A stretch of 64,000 nucleotides of DNA from Blastocladiella emersonii ATCC 22665 (Eukaryota; Fungi; Blastocladiomycota): the NCBI GenBank assembly GCA_025594325.1, contig JANHCV010000007.1, positions 124,001 to 188,000 of the forward strand. Direction: 5' to 3'. Position numbers and translations under genes: made by a program. Under the pieces are notes generated by a model. It saw nothing but the letters and a program-made list of their open reading frames with translations, did no database searches and was not told where the DNA came from. This document shows positions 1 through 12,693 of this stretch, piece by piece; position 1 is the stretch's first letter; each line of letters opens with the position of its first letter.

Positions 1-1889
1 TGAAGGTGAAGTGGCACCGTGGGCAATGCTTGGTGGTCCACGGCGTGCGCCGGCGGCCCGTCACCAGGTCGCACGCGCCGTCCGCGCGCTGCTGCGGCGT
101 CGACAGCGCCGTGCACACGGCGCACCGCTTGGACGTGTACCCCTCGGCGACGCGGAAGATGTCGACACCGCGGCGCACCAGCTGGTCCACGATCTCGACG
201 ACGGGACCGTGATGAGGGACACGGATCCCGCCGTACGTGAACTGGTGGCCGATGAGCACGACCGCGTCGTCGAGCGGCTTGGCCAGCTTGTCGAACATCC
301 TCTGGCGCTGCCGGTGCGTGAAGAAGTTGAGGCGCCCGAGCGCCGCGCGCCCCGCCTCGGCGAGCGTCGCCTCCTCGGCAGCCACGTTGGCGCGGATCTT
401 GTCGGCGAGCGGGCGGGCGGGGTGCGCGGCCGCGGCACAGGCCTTGTCGTGCTTGTCGAGCCTGTGCTGCGTGCGCCACTTGCGCGAGCGGCGCGACTTG
501 ATGTGCGAGCCGGTCTTGTGGTGGAACTCGGTCGCCGAAATGCCGTCAAACCGGTGATCGAGGCCCTCCTTGGTGAGGGCGACGTCGAGCAGGGTCTCGC
601 TCAGCGGCTCGAGGGCCGCAGCCAGCGCGTCCTCGTCCAGCGCCGGGTTGGCGTGCAGCGCGGCGGCCTCGGCGACGACGTTGTCCTTGAGGTGGTAGAG
701 GAGCGGGAGCGACACGGAGATGGCCTCGATGGGCGAGTTGGCGTCGGGGTCGATTGAGACACCCTTGGTCTTGCCGGCGCGCACCGGGATCGGGCCGTCG
801 TGCAGGTTCATGCCGGCGCCGCGGCGGCGGTCGACACGGTGCTGCGGTGGCGGCGAGAAGACGAGCGGTGGATCGCCGGGCTCCACGTCAGGCTCGACGA
901 GCGGGCCGGTCAGGGCAAGCTTGACTCGGTTGGCGTCGGACATTTTCTTGCGGATCCGTGTCGACGGCGCGTGGTCGTGCGGGCGGAGCCCATCGCGGCA
1001 CATGAGGACCCGCGCCGAGTACCCGTCCGTCATGATCGAGCCGTAGAATTGGTTGATGGGTTGGGCGCCGCGCCGAAGCCGCCAGCACAGGTCGTGCTTG
1101 ATGAACGAGGAGCAGTGGGCGAGCAGGTAGTCCCAGTGCACCTTTGCGAGGCGCGCATCCTCGAGCTCGTACTCGGCGACGCGCTCCAGCGCATCGGTCC
1201 AGTCCATGCCGTCCGCGTCGGGTCGTCGAGCACGTCGTAGTCGCCTTTCGGCCAGGCGGCGAATATGCCGCGGGTGATGGGCGACGGCGGCTTTCCACGA
1301 CCCGCGGCCGACATGAGGGCCTCGAAGGGCATGTGGAAGAAGCGGCCGCGGACCTTGAGCTGCGGCACCGTGGGCGGGACCGGGGTCGACGCCTGGATGA
1401 GCCCGCGCGGACGTAGTCGTCGCGCAGGCGGTGCAGGCGCAGCAGGCGCTGGAGCCAGGGGACGCCGTCGATGTTGATGCCAGCGTCACCGCGGACGAGG
1501 TGCTTGGTGTTGCGGACCAGCGCGTCGACCTCATCCGCGTCCTCGGGGTGCCGCTCGAGCCACCAGTCGAGCTGGTAGTGGGCGAGCAGCGCGGCCTCGG
1601 CCGTCTTGACCTCCTGCTTGACGAGGGCCTCGGCCAGCGTGGTAATGTACTTGTCGCCCTCCTTCCACCCCTCGCGCTCGATCTCGCCCACGTAGGTGCG
1701 CGCCAGCGGGTCCATGGGGACCGGTCGGCCTCCGCCGATGCAGTTGCGGGCGTAGACGGCGAGGAGGTTGGGCGTCTGCAGCGCGATGATCTTGAGCGAG
1801 TTGTACGGCCGGACGCGCTGATCACGCCGCGTGAGCGAGTGACGCACCGGCTGGCAAACGCGCTTTCGGCCGACCTCCCTCGCTGCCAC
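1..1889 (-). mobile_element. Fz1: Fanzor1-like (TnpB/Cas12-family) RuvC nuclease gene; about 630 codons visible, two apparent single-base frameshifts, 3' end outside the window
   Basis: Manual translation of the minus frame that is open from about 1220 to base 1 gives FYGSIMTDGYSARVL (Fanzor1-type TDG motif), GVSIDPD (RuvC-I Asp), FDGISATEFHHKTG, VVLIGHQF, FRVAEGYTSKRCAVC (RuvC-II Glu plus CxxC) and KHCPRCHFTF (second CxxC). The upstream parts lie in track ORFs 888..1889 and 1030..1368 and join if one base is added near 1403 and one near 1221. RuvC-III and the omegaRNA would lie left of base 1. Confidence 0.88.
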
Positions 1890-1894
1890 AAGAC

Positions 1895-3854
1895 GTGCTT
1901 GGTGTCATCCGCAACGCCGACCGCATCCTCGCCGCCCTCAACGCTGGGCACGAGGGAGAGCGGTACCCGGTCAAGTTCCGCCGGATCCTGACCATATGCG
2001 CACCCGTTGACCCGGGCATCACGGGCATCGACGCGCCGGCCGCCGACGGCCAGTTCCACTTCTTGGGCGTGTCCGTGCCGACCGACTACGCAGGCCCGCT
2101 CGGGCCGTTCGCGGCCGATGTGCTGGTCCGCGCGCAGCTCGCGCAGCTCATCTCGGACCGCACCAGCAGCCCGCGCGTGTCGCGGCTCATGTGCCTTGAG
2201 CTGCAGCCCGACCGCCTGCCGCAAGGAGAGGGCGACTCGGACGCGACCCTCGCGGCCATGAGCTTCGATCTCAACCACGGTTATATTCGCGTGCCCACCT
2301 TTGATCGAGAGTACGTCTGATTCGCTCGCATTCCACCTCCACGCCGCCCGCTCACCACGATTCCCACCACCCTAGCCTCGGACGTCTCGCGTCCATTGTG
2401 TTCTCGGTTCGCCCTCTCGGGAACCAGGCCATGGACGTGGACGCGCCTGCAGCGCCGCGGCAACGGCGTCGTGATCCGCAACTCGGGATCGAGTATGACC
2501 TGCGCGCCCCGAAGTACGTGCAGCATGACGCGTACGACACCGGCGAGCGCGAGCGCGACCGCGTCGTGGCCACCGAGCGCACCTACGTCTCCGTCTTTCG
2601 CAAGGACGAGAAGAACATGTGGATCGGGTCCATTTCGTACGGGTCGCCGCAAATCGTCTGCGGGCAGTGGTCCAAGGGCCAGTCGCGGCAGTCGCGCGAC
2701 ATCATGCTCGGGCGCAAGCTCCCGCCCAAGACGGAGCTGTGCCGCTTGTTCAAGGTGGACGCGATCCGCGCCGAGCTCGTCTTTGTCGCGCTCCCGTCTA
2801 TGCACGTGCCGGCCGAGGACGGCGCGCCCGCGGCACGCGGTGCGCCAGGTGGTCGTGGTCGGCATGTCGGACGTGATGGTGCAGCTCCCCCCGTCGGTGG
2901 CCTGCCGCCGGAAATGCCGCAGCAGCCGCCGCTCGCGGCGGTCGTGGTGCTCAAGGCGGCGGCGGTCGTGGTGCTCAAGGCGGTCGTGGTGCCCAAGGCC
3001 GCGGCCGTGGTGCTCAAGGCGGCCGAAGTGGTGCTCGTGGTCGTGACCGAGGTGCGGCGGCAGTCCCCTCCATCCCCGTCCCGCCGCCTGGTCCCGCAGG
3101 TGCCGCGGCGGCCCCCTACTTCGGCGCCCCACCGCCCGCTCCCGCCGGTGCCGCGGCGGTCCCCTTCGGCGCCCCGATGCTGCAGCCCGGTCCCGCAGGT
3201 GCCGTGACGGGCCCCATCGACGTCCTGCTGCCGCAGCCCGCTCCTGCTGCCGCCTCAATCCCCGCGGGCATCTCGTCGCCTCGTCTTGCAGGTGCCGCGG
3301 CGACAGGGGCCGGCACTCCGCTGCGTCCACGTCCGTCAGTGAGCGCCGCCACGGCTCCCCCATCACCCGCGTCTTGGAGCACCATCGCCGCCACTCCGCC
3401 GCGCCCGCTCGCTCCGCTTCCTGCCGCGCGGTCGCGCCCTCGCACGCCAACGATTGCCTCCTCGGCCGCCTCTTCACCATCGTCGTGGGGTGCCTCCTTC
3501 TCAACCTCGCCGCAGCCGCACACTTCGCCCGCTCGCGCAGCACCACACGCATCCGCATCGTCGAGTGCGGCCTCACGCTCATCTGCGTCGTCGAGGTCCG
3601 CTGCAGCCCAACACCCGCCCGCGTCGTCAAGCGCCACGGCCGCGGCTCCTCTTGCCCTTCCGCTGCTCGCGACTTTCAAAACGGTTGCGGATCAGCTCAC
3701 TAACATGGAGCTCACCGCTGCCGCAGCCTATGCCATGACGCCGCCCGGACGGGCCTTCATCATTGACAAGTTTGCCAACAGGCTCTCGCTACACAATGTT
3801 GTCCAGAATTTCTTGGACTTCTACGAGAGACGGCCTCAGAGACGGGAGGAGTAG
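1895..3854 (+). CDS. Uncharacterised protein: globular-looking N-terminal region, GGRGAQG repeats, Pro/Ala/Ser-rich tract and short helical C-terminus; 5' end unresolved; one apparent frameshift
   Basis: ORF 1895..2320 joins ORF 2398+ in frame through an intron at 2311-2375 (GTACGT donor, CTCAC branch-like site, CCTAG acceptor). A frameshift near 2887-2902 leads into the frame reading AAGNAAAAAARGGRGAQG..., which continues into ORF 3177..3854. Third codon positions are strongly C/G-biased. Confidence 0.6.
2936..3045 (+). repeat. Imperfect tandem repeat of about 18-24 nt (ggcggtcgtggtgctcaa) encoding GGRGAQG
   Basis: About four copies are directly visible in the sequence. Confidence 0.8.
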
Positions 3855-4722
3855 GTTGAATACATGGTGTTATGGTCATTTTCGTGTGGGTCCTTTTGCG
3901 TCGAGGAGCGTCAGCGCAAGTTCTCCAGCGAGCAGAGCAGAGCCCGCAGGCTGGCAGAGAGCGAGCAGCGAAAATGGAGCCACTCACGTGCGTGGCGCCT
4001 CCACTAGCCTCGGCTTGAGTCTGAGCTCAACCGAGACGATGGCGACTTTGCCCTGCTCGCTCTCGCGTCGAAACGTTCGTCACCACCACAATGGCACGAA
4101 GCACCATGCATCAACGCCGCCGCCGTGCACACGCGTGCAGAATCGACAAACGCACCCGCCCGCGCACCGCCGCCGCGCCGAATCGCACATCGCCGTGCCG
4201 CCACCTCGGTGTCCACCCTGAACCATCCACCGTCGCCGCGCCGCCGTCCTGCCGAAACTATGCATCAACACCACGAAAATGCGGCTCCGTGACCGGCTGG
4301 ATGGTTTTCGGTGGACACCTTGCCGAAACGCTCGCCCCGGAGTCCCTGCGCACGAACGGGTAAGGGGAACCTAACGTCCATTGGCGCTGGTGACCAGAGA
4401 CCGTGGCGGAGCTCTCGACGTGCGGGAGCGCACCCTGTCGGATCGCCGTGCTCGCCAGCGCTATTTGTCGGACGGCGTGTCGTCCTAGGCGAAACGCCGT
4501 CTAGTCGACGTGCTGGCGTTCGTGGCGGTAGAGCACAGAAGATTGCGGTGTGGTGGTGGTCACGGCGTCGTATGTCGCGGGGGTGAGACTATGGCGGTGT
4601 GGACGTCTGCGTGACGTGCACCCGTCGATTCTGCGCTGCGTTGCGTCGGCGGCCGAGCGAACCTACGACCCTGTGATCTGGACGGCCGAGGCTGACGCCT
4701 GCCCCCGCTGTCCCGCTGTTAG

Positions 4723-4937
4723 CCCTCGAACAAGACCTTCAAGATCAAGCGCGTGCTCGGCAAGAAGCAGCGCCAGAACCGCCCCATCCCCCAGTGGATC
4801 CGTCTCCGCACGGACAACACCATCCGGTACGCCTTCTGCGCGGTCACGGACGTCTTGAGCCACGATCTGACTCTTCCTCGCCCCATAGCTACAACGCCAA
4901 GCGCCGCAACTGGCGCCGCACCAAGCTCAACATCTAA
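4723..4937 (+). CDS. RPL39: 60S ribosomal protein L39 (eL39); first exon carrying the ATG not located
   Basis: The exons read [35 protein letters not shown] and [15 protein letters not shown], with an intron at 4827-4888 and an acceptor AG at 4721-4722. Confidence 0.95.
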
Positions 4938-5152: not shown

Positions 5153-6100
5153 TCACTCAAGCGACTCGCGGCGGTCGCCGATCGCGGTCAGCATGTTGCG
5201 GAAGTAGCTCATGCGCGATGTGGCATCGCGGGCGGCAGCGACGCCGGGCGAGTCGAGGTCGACGGGGTCAGCGTCGCCGCGGCGCACGGCGAGCGGGTTT
5301 GGGAGCTCGGCGAAGGCGGCGTCGAGGTCGGCCATGGCCGTGTCGATCGCGTCTACACGATCCTGAAATGAGCGGCGCGTTCACGGGGAGGGAGCACAGC
5401 CAAACGTACCCTGGACCTCGGCCTGGATCCCATCGAGCTCCTCGTGCGACGCGGCCTCGTCAATGGCCTCGCGCGTCTCCATGACGAACATGAGGATCTC
5501 GGGGTCATCCACAGGCATGGCATCCTCCGCGACCTCGACGCCCAGCAGCCCGAGAATGTACTCTGCGCGGCTCAGGTCGTCCTTGACGACGCCGTACGCG
5601 TTGTTCAGCGCATTCGACTGCGCAGCGGCCGCGTCGTGCAGGTCGGCGTCGCCCGTGAACTTGTCGGGGTGCACGGCGCGCTGGGTGGCGAGGAACCGTG
5701 TGCGGACCGCGGGCTGGTCGACCTGCCACAGCGGGAGCGCCGAGGTCGACGAGTACGTCAGGTCGCCCGACGCCAGCAGGTCAAAGTGCGTCGTGAGCGA
5801 GGGGCCCGCGTACGGCTGCGGCCGCGCGCATTGCGGGCACACGGCGGCGACGGTGGGTGTCGGGAAGTGGCAGCCCGCGCACGGGCGTAGGGCAGAGGTG
5901 TCGGACGTCGAGTACGCGCGGGCGAGCGAGGAGCGGCGGAGGATCGGCGCAGCGCAGTAGCGGGCAGCGGGTGATGATGGCACCGATCGCGCGGCGAGCA
6001 GCGATGACACGGAGCGCGTGGTGGCCGCAGGTACGCGGCGCAGCGCGTGTGCGGCGAGTCGGTTCATGGGATTCCGGAGCATGGCGTTGTTCATGAGCAT
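5153..6100 (-). CDS. HSC20: Mitochondrial Fe-S cluster co-chaperone HscB/HSC20 (J-protein)
   Basis: Has a mitochondrial-presequence-like N-terminus, CAGC...CPQC, the J-domain HPD motif (VHPDKF), and LNNAYGVVKDDLSRAEYIL, DPEILMFVMETRE. Intron at 5353-5409. The start is one of several ATGs at 6067-6100. Confidence 0.9.
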
Positions 6101-9691: not shown

Positions 9692-10788
9692 GGTTTGTTC
9701 GCGTGTGGCAGAATTCGATGCCGGCAGCGAGTGAAACGGGCAACTCTAACTCAAGCTCGCGACGAGGTGCAGCGGCAGCGGCAGGGCAAGATTCATGAGC
9801 CAGGTCGAGTCAGGATGTGCTGGATGGATCAGGAGAGCGTAGAGTTATCGACCGGTGGCCGCGGTCGTGGTCGCGGCGCGGGTCGGACGTGTCCCCCACG
9901 ATGGCCGGGGGGAGACATGGCGGCGGCGGCCAGCAGTGCGCGCGCGTCTCGCGGCCGCGCGACCATGGCCATGGCCACGGCCACGGTGGCGGGTGGTGGC
10001 CGCCACGACTCATGTGCCGGCCGGGCGCGGGCAGAGTCGGAGCGCGGTCAGTGGTTAAGGGATCATGGGGCGCCAGCGCCACCGCCGCAGCTCATCCCAG
10101 CCCCGCAGTTCCCTTGTTCGTGCGGTGGAAGGGCGCGTATTTTTGGGCGCGCTGCCTGGTGCCGGAACGAACCGCTGCGAGTCGCTGCGAGGGGTGGTGA
10201 GCGGGGTGCGGTTGCGTCGCGAAGCGTTCGCTGAGAGTGGGAGAGTACAAAGAGGGCGCGGCCCCCCGCGCGACTCCCCTCCCTCCTGCCCGCTTCTCCC
10301 TCCTTCCCGATTCCGCCCTAAGCGCACGCGACGCGACCTTTCGGTGCGTGCGTCCTTCCCTCCGCCGAATTCGGCCCCGTCCCCGCTCGCGTGCCCCAGG
10401 CGTGATGTCTCGCGCGCGCGTCTCGCACTCCCCCCTCGCCTCTGCCGCGCTACGCGTCGCGCGCGCGTGTCTCCGAGCACCGCGACACGGCCGTGTTCGC
10501 GAGCGAGCCATCGTCCACCACCAGCGCGATTCCCACGGCCGGGCGCGATCCTCCCCCCGCATGACCTGACCCCCGCGTGCCTGCGGTGAGCCTGGCGACC
10601 CGATCTGTTCCGATCCAACGCCGCTCGCCGTCGCTCTCTCTCCTCCTCCTCACCTGCCTCTTCACTGTTGATGCAACTTGTCGCTGACTCTGCCCACTTG
10701 CACTTGCCGCCCGCCAGACTCGTCGCTCCCTGATCCGCAACGGGAAACCACCACCACCTCGTGCCCGATCGCCCGCGCACCACCCACC

Positions 10789-12693
10789 ATGGCTGCCGTC
10801 GCCACCGCCACCGCGGCGCCCGCCGCTCCCGCCCCCTCCTCGGCATCGACGTCGCCGTACATGAAGTCTGCCACCCCTGCTTCCGCACGCCCGCGCCCGC
10901 CCGCCGTGTCGCGCGTGCAGGCCGCACACGCCGCGCCGTCCCCGTCATCGACCGCCGCCGTGGGTCTGCGGCTCAACACGCCGACGGCGCCGCCCACCTC
11001 CTCAACCTCGCGCCGGTCGCCGCCCGTCCGGGGCACCGGGTTCGTGCGCGGCGCGAGCTCCTCTGGGTCCGGCTCGGCGGCTCTCCCGCTGACGCCCACG
11101 TCATCGGACGTGGCTGTCCTGATCTCGGCTGCAACCGCTGCCAGCGGGCTGCGCCGGTCCGCGTCCTCGTCGTCCGCTGCATCGTCGGGCCGTAAAGCCG
11201 CGCGCGCAACAGCCAGCGGGCTGTCGAACCGCGCGTCGCTGTCGAGCATCCCGTACGCATCCGCGAGTAGCGGGTCGCTCGTGTCGCTCGTCCGCACCGC
11301 GTCGCTGTCCGCCTCGGCGTCGTCGCTCGTCACCGCCGAAGACGACGGGAAGCATCACGGGCTCGCGCCCGCGGACAGCGGTGTCCTCGTCGACTCGCTC
11401 GGCGTGCTCCCGCCGCTCCCCGGCGTGCTGCCCGCGCCCATCCCGCCGCCCTCCTCGTCGATCGAGACCGCCGACACTCCTGCCGCTCCTGCTGCGGTGT
11501 CGTTGTCAGCCGACCCGGCCGCCGCGTGGCTCGCCGAGGCGCGCGCCGAGGCCCACGAGGCCACTTTGGCGGACGCCGACGAAGAAGAGGAAGAGTCGTC
11601 CCCGCTCGACCGCCCCCGGCCGCTGCTGTACGTGCAGCACCTGCAGGTGCAGTGGGGGCTCGACGAGGACCTGGTCGACGCCGCCGCCCGCATCGACGCC
11701 GACACGGAGCGCGCCACCCGGTACAACGCCCTGAGCGCCGCTGACGAGGCCGTCGTTGCCGCCGCTGCCACTCCAACCAAGGCGCCGCGCTCGCCAAAGC
11801 GTGACCGCCGGCGCGACTCGGGCGTCAGCTTCCGCGCGACCACCGTCGGCCATATGCGGCGGTTCGACCCGGACGCGCCGCTCGCCGACGCGTGGATCGC
11901 CGGCGAGGTGGCCGTCCTCGGCAACGACGTCAAGCGGCCCGTCAGCCTCGTCGTCCTGCCGCCCGGGTTCGTCCCGCCCACGGCCGACGGCGACGCGCCT
12001 GCCGTGCCCGCGATCCCCGCGACCGCGTTCGCACACGCACTGTCCCCGCCCACCGTCACGGGGATCGTCGTGTCGCCGAGCCTCGCACACGCGGATGTCG
12101 CGGGGACCTCGCCGCCGAGTGGCGGGAAGCGGACGAGTCTCGCGCTCGCGCCGCGGCCCGTCTCGGTCTCGGCCGCCGCTGAGCCCGCCGCCGCTGTCGA
12201 GCAGGAGTCTGCACCGGTGGCGGCGCCCTCGACGACGCGGTTCCTCGACCCGCGCGGGCTCGTCGCCAAGCTGTCGAGCGGCGGCAGCGGTAGCAGCGGG
12301 AACCCGCACCGGATCACGCCCGTGGATGGCGACCTCGATACCATTGGTCCGGATGCCGGTGAACCCGCTGCCCCCGCCGCTGCCGAGTCTCCCGCGCCCA
12401 CCCAGCAGCGCTCGTCGCTCATGCTCACGGTGCGGCCGGGCTCGCTGGGCCCGCTGGCGCTCGCCGAGTCGCCGTCGCTGTCGCCCGAGCTGCCCGCCGC
12501 GTCCGCGTGCAGTACCGCGGGGAACGGGGCCCGTCGCGTGGGCCCCTCGGGAATCAAGTACCACGTCGTCTCGGACGAGACGAGCAGCAGCAAGGAGGGC
12601 GGCAAGCACCACATCGGCGGCGGCGTCAAGCTCCCGTCGCGGTGGCTGCGCCGGCTCGCGCAGCGGCTCGGGCTCACGAGCTGTGTGCCGTAG
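10789..12693 (+). CDS. Hypothetical low-complexity Ser/Ala/Pro-rich protein
   Basis: Long intronless ORF (track 10678..12693) with cacccaccATG at 10789 and coding-like codon bias. No family recognised. Confidence 0.6.
   Translation: MAAVATATAAPAAPAPSSASTSPYMKSATPASARPRPPAVSRVQAAHAAPSPSSTAAVGLRLNTPTAPPTSSTSRRSPPVRGTGFVRGASSSGSGSAALPLTPTSSDVAVLISAATAASGLRRSASSSSAASSGRKAARATASGLSNRASLSSIPYASASSGSLVSLVRTASLSASASSLVTAEDDGKHHGLAPADSGVLVDSLGVLPPLPGVLPAPIPPPSSSIETADTPAAPAAVSLSADPAAAWLAEARAEAHEATLADADEEEEESSPLDRPRPLLYVQHLQVQWGLDEDLVDAAARIDADTERATRYNALSAADEAVVAAAATPTKAPRSPKRDRRRDSGVSFRATTVGHMRRFDPDAPLADAWIAGEVAVLGNDVKRPVSLVVLPPGFVPPTADGDAPAVPAIPATAFAHALSPPTVTGIVVSPSLAHADVAGTSPPSGGKRTSLALAPRPVSVSAAAEPAAAVEQESAPVAAPSTTRFLDPRGLVAKLSSGGSGSSGNPHRITPVDGDLDTIGPDAGEPAAPAAAESPAPTQQRSSLMLTVRPGSLGPLALAESPSLSPELPAASACSTAGNGARRVGPSGIKYHVVSDETSSSKEGGKHHIGGGVKLPSRWLRRLAQRLGLTSCVP

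Follow-up and report, generated by a model that had tools for sequence, protein, structure and literature searches.

Does the gene that runs off the left edge of a 64,000-nucleotide (nt) stretch of the Blastocladiella emersonii ATCC 22665 genome encode a working Fanzor1 RNA-guided nuclease? The stretch, referred to as the window, belongs to contig JANHCV010000007.1 of assembly GCA_025594325.1. An original prediction, made from the letters alone, had placed at positions 1-1889 of its minus strand a hidden Fanzor1 of roughly typical size with intact catalytic residues. The question has two parts, descent and function. The gene, here called P0001 after its GenBank model, is a highly diverged new member of the known Fanzor1 family and a pseudogene copy; probably the locus is a pseudogenised Fanzor1-family copy lying between ordinary host genes. 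Sequence outside the window is cited by locus L001, which comprises the P0001 gene and 10 kb on either side and whose coordinate equals 11716 minus the window coordinate.

The family assignment depended on the depth of the search. The 403 amino acids (aa) visible in the window matched only Cas12f1-like_TNB in Pfam (19.2 bits, below the cut-off of 26.3), no family was found by an NCBIfam scan of the same residues, and the best hit of a single-sequence phmmer search against the PDB was Cas12f at E=0.04. Single-sequence searching was too weak, and Fanzor1 came into reach only with aligned paralogues. The resulting family profile, A1, was built from 21 relatives. In the PDB it matched 8GKH, the Spizellomyces punctatus Fanzor1 (SpuFz1), at E=3.5e-13 over a span from the WED 'TDG' motif to RuvC-III, followed by the Parasitella Fanzor1 (PpFz1) at 7e-8 and by LaTranC, TnpB, Cas12f, GtFz1 and the mimivirus Fanzor2 at ~2e-6 to 1.5e-3. 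The bit scores fall from 52.8 for SpuFz1 to 35.2 for PpFz1, 22.7 for ISDra2 TnpB, 22.1 for GtFz1 and 20.9 for Fanzor2. An AlphaFold2 model computed with A1 as input has a predicted local distance difference test (pLDDT) score of 85-97 at residues 280-570 and a poor N-terminal half. When this model was compared with the PDB by Foldseek, four SpuFz entries led (E=3e-7 to 1e-6), followed by PpFz, Cas12f, TnpB and Fanzor2, and all of the 50 best matches listed were Fanzor, TnpB or Cas12 structures. Both comparisons place the predicted TnpB/Fanzor membership beyond chance. On profile and modelled fold P0001 is a homologue within the TnpB/Fanzor superfamily, and its best matches, together with its signature residues, file it under Fanzor1, as had been proposed.

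These signature residues follow the definition of TnpB/Fanzor proteins as D-X(125,275)-[TS][TS]-X-X-C4-X(5,50)-RD (Bao & Jurka, 2013, PMC3627910). P0001 presents D299, an interval of 204 residues, T504 S505 K R, the cysteines C508..C511..C541..C544, five further residues and R550 D551. The last pair belongs to the RuvC-III motif NRDHNAALNIL, which lies outside the window, five residues after CPRC, with the RD 5-7 nt beyond base 1. The conserved D/E/D columns of A1 coincide with D383/E541/D606 of SpuFz1 in the 8GKH alignment (after subtraction of a 394-residue maltose-binding protein offset), which are metal-coordinating residues (Saito et al., 2023). A rearranged catalytic site with a relocated Glu is typical of Fanzors (Jiang et al., 2023, PMC10530073). 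In P0001 the relocated E501 stands two residues ahead of the TS motif, and the Fanzor1-specific combination of G466 and E501 is shared by P0001 and at least 90% of the members in the alignment, with a spacing of 35 residues compared to 36 in SPu-1-1p (G500/E536). The third residue of RuvC-I is Asp (DPD) in P0001, Gly (DPG) in most paralogues and Asn in SpuFz1 (DPN), where Asn385 is a metal ligand that contributes to Mg2+ binding. Because the closest paralogue, P0033, has DPG, the second Asp of the DPD motif is a recent change.

Much of the original prediction stood up to this comparison. Its four motifs do lie on the minus strand in the order WED, RuvC-I, RuvC-II and zinc finger, within one stop-free frame that runs from window 1222 to 1 and off the edge, and this frame was missing from the list of open reading frames (ORFs) only because ORFs cut by an end of the sequence are left out of that list. 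The two visible catalytic residues, D299 and E501, are intact, and the host is a GC-rich zoosporic fungus, as had been surmised. The prediction was to fall if no profile or structural match was obtained or if no RuvC-III motif lay past the window edge; the matches are those given above, and both the RuvC-III RD and the stop codon appear within 74 nt to the left of base 1, where L001 reads the C-terminus ...CPRCHFTFNRDHNAALNILLVHAPRLEFAPAV followed by the stop. The gene was not hidden, however, as it had already been modelled in GenBank, where the model carries a precomputed match to Pfam PF07282. The span 1-1889 was right in so far as the motif-bearing frame is real, but position 1889 marks no more than where a stop codon bounds the first frame: the annotated ATG lies at 1715-1713, and the gene is divided among three frame segments.

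It is this division that decides the functional part of the question (Table 1). The gene spans 1789 nt and, read through both breaks, gives an ORF of ~596 aa, a typical size as anticipated; segment 3 by itself is an open frame of 431 codons. Comparison was made with the closest paralogue, P0033 at locus L007 (contig JANHCV010000012.1; 87.6% DNA identity over L001 10189-11898), and with the more distant P0002 at locus L002 as outgroup. L007 is in a single frame across both break sites (..RDDYVRRGPVPASTP.., ..TVLENPNADGMEW..), and the L002 copy keeps one continuous frame along the whole gene, both sites included. Since neither is interrupted at these sites, the missing bases are derived in the window copy. 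The GenBank model masks both frameshifts with 'introns', one of 20 nt at window 1412-1393 that takes in the first site and one of 50 nt at window 1233-1184 that takes in the second. The claim of an intact nuclease gene therefore has to be given up: there are two derived 1-nt deletions in the N-terminal third, on which DNA contigs of four sequencing runs agree. P0001 lacks uninterrupted coding capacity for a full-length nuclease, which disqualifies it as a functional member of the family but not as a homologue.

Table 1. Features of the P0001 gene at the left edge of the window.
Feature	Window position	Strand	Basis or remark
Fanzor1-family gene per GenBank model P0001, 572 aa	1..1715	-	last 74 nt left of base 1 (L001 11716-11789)
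Frame segment 1: ATG at 1715-1713 and N-terminal region, poorly conserved	1408..1715	-	three-frame translation, paralogue comparison
Frame segment 2 (..GLIQASTPVPPTVPQLKVRGRFFHMPFEAL..WPKGDYDVLDD)	1223..1407	-	three-frame translation, paralogue comparison
Frame segment 3: WED-RuvC-zinc finger core, without stop up to the window edge	1..1222	-	translation, family profile
Frameshift 1: 1 base fewer than paralogue L007 (CCGCCGC -> CCGCGC)	1408/1407 (L001 10308/10309)	-	DNA alignment
Frameshift 2: 1 base fewer than L007 within a C run	1223/1222 (L001 10493/10494)	-	DNA alignment
GSIMTDGYS, WED 'TDG' motif	1016..1042	-	aligned with FEGSITTDGASV of SpuFz1
SIDPD, RuvC-I; D299 = codon 751-749	743..757	-	profile column aligned with SpuFz1 D383
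G466 in VVLIGHQF, Fanzor1-specific Gly at the site of the canonical TnpB RuvC-II Glu	248..250	-	family alignment, Bao & Jurka G500
AEGYTSKRCAVC: relocated RuvC-II Glu E501 (codon 145-143), TS motif, first CxxC (C508, C511)	113..148	-	E501 column = SpuFz1 E541
CPRCHFTF, second CxxC of the C4 zinc finger (C541, C544)	2..25	-	translation

Several points weigh against reading the locus as a dead Fanzor1 gene. Placement in the Fanzor1 clade, drawn from best matches and signature residues, is a putative one. Both excised stretches start with GT and end with AG, and all three frame segments are free of stop codons; with such borders and open segments, P0001 might in principle be spliced. The four DNA runs all stem from one sample, which may be the assembly's own source. 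Finally, the low ratio of nonsynonymous to synonymous substitution rates (dN/dS) of 0.2-0.3 in the protein core could also reflect a shorter C-terminal product that is still in use.

If the GenBank model were correct, P0001 would be expressed as an intact Fanzor1 gene, the spliceosome would remove two very small introns (20 and 50 nt), and the product would be a working RNA-guided nuclease of 572 aa. Besides the splice-like borders and the absence of stops, the intact D/E/D triad and C4 finger and the constrained core would suit such a gene, but it is improbable on four counts. An intron of 20 nt is below the known size range of fungal spliceosomal introns and has no known precedent in fungi. 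Both 'introns' run collinear with coding sequence in L007 and L002 along their whole length, each of them being exactly one base short, and their excision loses 7 and 17 residues that are conserved among the paralogues. The same annotation run also removed ~168 in-frame nt from P0002 (L002:10609-10775) for which the window copy has homologous coding sequence (DPPLV.S.PP.HRV.RRR.AG); that 'intron' is probably spurious as well, which on the alignment would give P0002 a true ORF of ~561 codons. Spurious introns or fusion with a neighbouring gene were in fact found in all four family models whose exon structure was checked (P0001, P0002, P0033 and the fused P0032). The gene model at L008 is fused with an upstream alpha/beta-hydrolase gene.

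Both breaks fall in short G/C-rich runs, where the consensus of long reads can drop a base, and the true gene could in that case be an uninterrupted ORF of ~596 aa. The contigs of the four runs, with depths of ~123, 27, 4 and 3, extend over window 1076-2400 or over portions of it that include both sites and align there with 0 gaps, and the assembly itself was made from PacBio HiFi reads and polished with Illumina reads. Together these make an assembly error unlikely. The sister copy at L007 carries a different frameshift, which fits decay rather than sequencing error, and two consensus errors are thus a highly improbable source of the breaks. Variant contigs over window 86-681 were considered as a second allele and rejected: with the 38 listed changes, this stretch agrees with L007 at all but 6 of 596 positions, and the variants derive from the L007 paralogue.

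The L007 copy is broken by a 4-nt insertion at L007 9736, absent from L001 and L002, which the GenBank model of P0033 bridges with an 'intron' that drops 15 conserved residues (VHWDYLLAHCSSFIK). Comparison of L001 with L007 gives a dN/dS of 0.38 for the final 402 codons; by region the ratio is 0.2-0.3 for the WED/RuvC core, 1.15 for the N-terminal part and 1.35 for the helical insert. The low values in the core and the intact catalytic residues indicate that the gene had been under purifying selection for a time before it was inactivated. Judged by these alignments, the window and L007 copies share a partly constrained history, after which each was disabled independently.

The pseudogene reading, which remains the preferred one, can be told as a sequence of events. 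The ancestral gene was an ORF of ~596 aa with the Fanzor1 layout, from a variable N-terminal region through the WED 'TDG' motif and the RuvC-I Asp to the Gly that replaces the canonical RuvC-II Glu, the relocated Glu, the C4 zinc finger and the RuvC-III RD. It spread within a discrete unit of ~1.9-2.2 kb that carried only the Fanzor gene. The window copy afterwards lost one base at each of two sites in its N-terminal third, while the sister copy independently gained its 4 nt, and a full-length nuclease should no longer be producible from the window locus. By analogy with characterised Fanzor1 enzymes, the intact protein would have cut DNA beside a target-adjacent motif (TAM), in complex with an omegaRNA that the unit's 3' end encodes.

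The idea of a discrete unit comes from the limits of homology between copies. L001 and L007 are securely homologous from L001 10068, possibly from near 9841 (E=9e-5), within the 5' region, and their homology stops sharply at L001 11898, outside the window and 109 nt after the stop codon. A second pair, L002:9791-11957 and L008:7007-9143, forms a 2.16-kb unit of 91% identity with sharp ends, 210 nt ahead of the ATG and 270 nt beyond the stop codon. Dispersed, discrete units of ~1.9-2.2 kb, made up of a Fanzor ORF and short non-coding ends only, are thus recognisable by alignment, and the sharp-ended duplication shows past mobility. The window copy itself does not reside in a recognisable transposon: no inverted repeats enclose P0001, and no transposase lies within 10 kb of it. 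A search for terminal inverted repeats bracketing the gene gave only imperfect GC-rich chance matches within coding sequence, and neither a transposase nor a terminal inverted repeat was seen at the Fanzor-unit loci examined.

The 109-nt tail shared with L007 lies where an omegaRNA would be sought. The original prediction expected an omegaRNA and an element end to the left of base 1; neither has been demonstrated for the window copy, and the 109-nt tail is only a weak, alignment-based omegaRNA candidate. L001 and L007 differ in it by 12 substitutions, every one a transition. Placed on the fold of L001, these disrupt a single base pair, compared to an expectation of 3.4 (P ~0.01 by retained energy, ~0.1 by broken pairs). 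RNAalifold found one compensatory pair and seven one-sided changes; with two sequences only, this covariation is not significant, as 228 of 500 shuffles reach it. The 351-nt 3' stretch that holds the tail (L001 11690-12040) is no more stably folded than its shuffled versions (z=+0.84), the 3' region gave only chance-level matches in Rfam at a permissive threshold, and a covariance model of the tail found no other copy in 217 kb (the window and loci L001-L009). The 270-nt tail of the L002/L008 unit is better structured (z=-2.0) and contains a 13-bp hairpin with one compensatory change, U-A to C-G. For the B. emersonii Fanzor family as a whole, an omegaRNA is plausible from these folds.

Some function might nonetheless have survived at the window locus, either as an N-terminally truncated WED-RuvC protein started within segment 3 or, if only the 3' RNA is left, as a 'ghost'-like donor of omegaRNA to intact paralogues in trans. 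The 431 open codons, the intact active site and a dN/dS of 0.2-0.3 in most of the segment would agree with the first form. The tail shared with L007, whose substitutions disrupt a single pair of the L001 fold, would agree with the second, as would the ORF-less 'ghost' Spu-1 elements of S. punctatus, which retain the region around the right-end repeat. Against the RNA form stand the unremarkable folding of the 3' stretch, the non-significant covariation, and the lack of an Rfam match or of a further tail copy in the sequence searched. Solved Fanzor1 structures have N-terminal REC/WED parts in contact with omegaRNA and heteroduplex, and by that analogy a truncated protein would be unlikely to work. 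Reduced function of either kind is accordingly judged unlikely. Much the same holds for a wider proposal, that the Fanzor-only units of ~2 kb in B. emersonii are maintained as a population that is large, ancient and strongly diverged, self-moving or co-opted by the host, and that intact paralogues receive a structured 3' guide RNA in trans from broken copies; this is a doubtful possibility.

The suggestion to look for other genomic copies proved fruitful. A homologue search with the window protein returned P0001 itself and a B. emersonii ATCC 22665 paralogue at 48% identity. When 1.84 billion representatives were searched exhaustively with HMMER, 27 relatives were recovered, 19 of them from B. 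emersonii and one from Gonapodya prolifera, the remainder being metagenome proteins, and an alignment search added three further, closer B. emersonii paralogues. The family thus comprises ~22 diverged gene models in this genome. No Allomyces protein was found at E<=1e-3 in the exhaustive search, which marks the B. emersonii family as a separate, lineage-specific radiation. Most paralogues in A1 retain the D/E/D residues and the C4 zinc finger; exceptions are P0007, which has N, A and G in place of the three RuvC catalytic residues, and P0012, which lacks the RuvC-I Asp. Intact paralogues include P0003 (a single exon, 639 aa) and the continuous ORF that occupies L002 10001-11686 at the P0002 locus.

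The genes within 10 kb of P0001 include RPL39, HSCB, asparaginase, DUF8399 and several unnamed ones, all either host genes or without a Pfam match. No transposase was present among these neighbours and no IS607-type serine recombinase near the gene. A scan for bacterial-type promoters and terminators, irrelevant for a eukaryote, gave nothing. The RPL39 model (window 1786-4937, plus strand) seems to be an ORF with RGG repeats fused with RPL39 exons, and its start is only ~70 nt from the Fanzor ATG. A ribosomal protein gene lies 5' of both closest copies, head-to-head or within a few kb: RPL39 here and RPL24e at L007 (L007:6274-7343, minus strand).

Repeats were noticed at two of the paralogous loci. 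At L007, a 70-nt direct repeat of 89% identity flanks the P0033 unit (L007:7354-7423 and 11123-11191), one arm immediately preceding the ATG of RPL24e and the second following the 3' end of the unit at a distance of 66 nt. Downstream lies a partial second Fanzor copy (L007:11313-11943, 69% identical) that comprises the C-terminal half only, and the whole looks like a nested or tandem insertion. At L004, an 89-nt inverted repeat of 79% identity (L004:834-922 and 5724-5805) encloses two genes (L004:2301-4749), one of which weakly matches a Plavaka transposase. It lies ~200 nt from P0008, on the upstream side of that Fanzor paralogue, and could be a transposon in its own right beside a Fanzor.

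Fanzor1 nucleases are compact eukaryotic candidates for genome editing, and their natural role is under debate. The window locus adds to them a lineage-specific radiation in a model zoosporic fungus, whose sharp-ended sister copies could serve for defining element ends, TAMs and omegaRNAs. In view of the spurious GenBank models among the members checked and the dead copy in the window, mining of the family is better begun from the intact paralogues. A literature search retrieved no paper linking Blastocladiella with Fanzor, and the supplements of Saito et al. (2023) and Yoon et al. (2023) mention neither Blastocladiella nor these accessions.

Among known systems, ISDra2 TnpB and Cas12f, which are prokaryotic OMEGA and type V-F nucleases, share with the B. 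emersonii protein the fold of the WED-RuvC-zinc finger core (Foldseek E ~1e-4) and the Pfam Cas12f1-like_TNB match. The canonical RuvC-II Glu is replaced by Gly466 in P0001, with the acting Glu 35 residues downstream, and the window gene resides in a eukaryote, lacks a TnpA and has a longer N-terminal half. Fanzor2, represented by the mimivirus ApmFz2 (PDB 9B0L), has the rearranged catalytic Glu and the overall core in common with P0001, but the profile match is much weaker (E=1.5e-3 compared to 3.5e-13 for SpuFz1), and the IS607-type serine recombinase is missing nearby. Fanzor1 is known to be widespread in early-diverging fungi. From Allomyces macrogynus three Fanzor1 families have been reported (Bao & Jurka, 2013, PMC3627910). 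These come from the same phylum, Blastocladiomycota, and show the same defining motif with the Fanzor1-specific Gly and Glu; unlike Fanzor1 genes of Allomyces and other early-diverging fungi, P0001 has no Mariner, Helitron, Sola, IS4 or MuDR association at its locus. The best match of the family in both profile and structure is SpuFz1 of the Spu-1 element (PDB 8GKH, 9CEU-9CEZ), with coinciding catalytic columns and nearly the same Gly-to-Glu spacing (35 against 36). The pairwise similarity of the two proteins is nevertheless below phmmer detection, RuvC-I reads DPD rather than DPN, and the window copy is frameshifted. The 30-nt inverted repeats of Spu-1 were not found around P0001. In architecture the two agree well, the Spu-1 element of 2.1 kb and the B. 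emersonii units of ~2 kb both carrying only a Fanzor ORF, and they differ in the spread among copies: those of Spu-1 are ~82% identical, whereas those of B. emersonii are mostly <50% identical among themselves.

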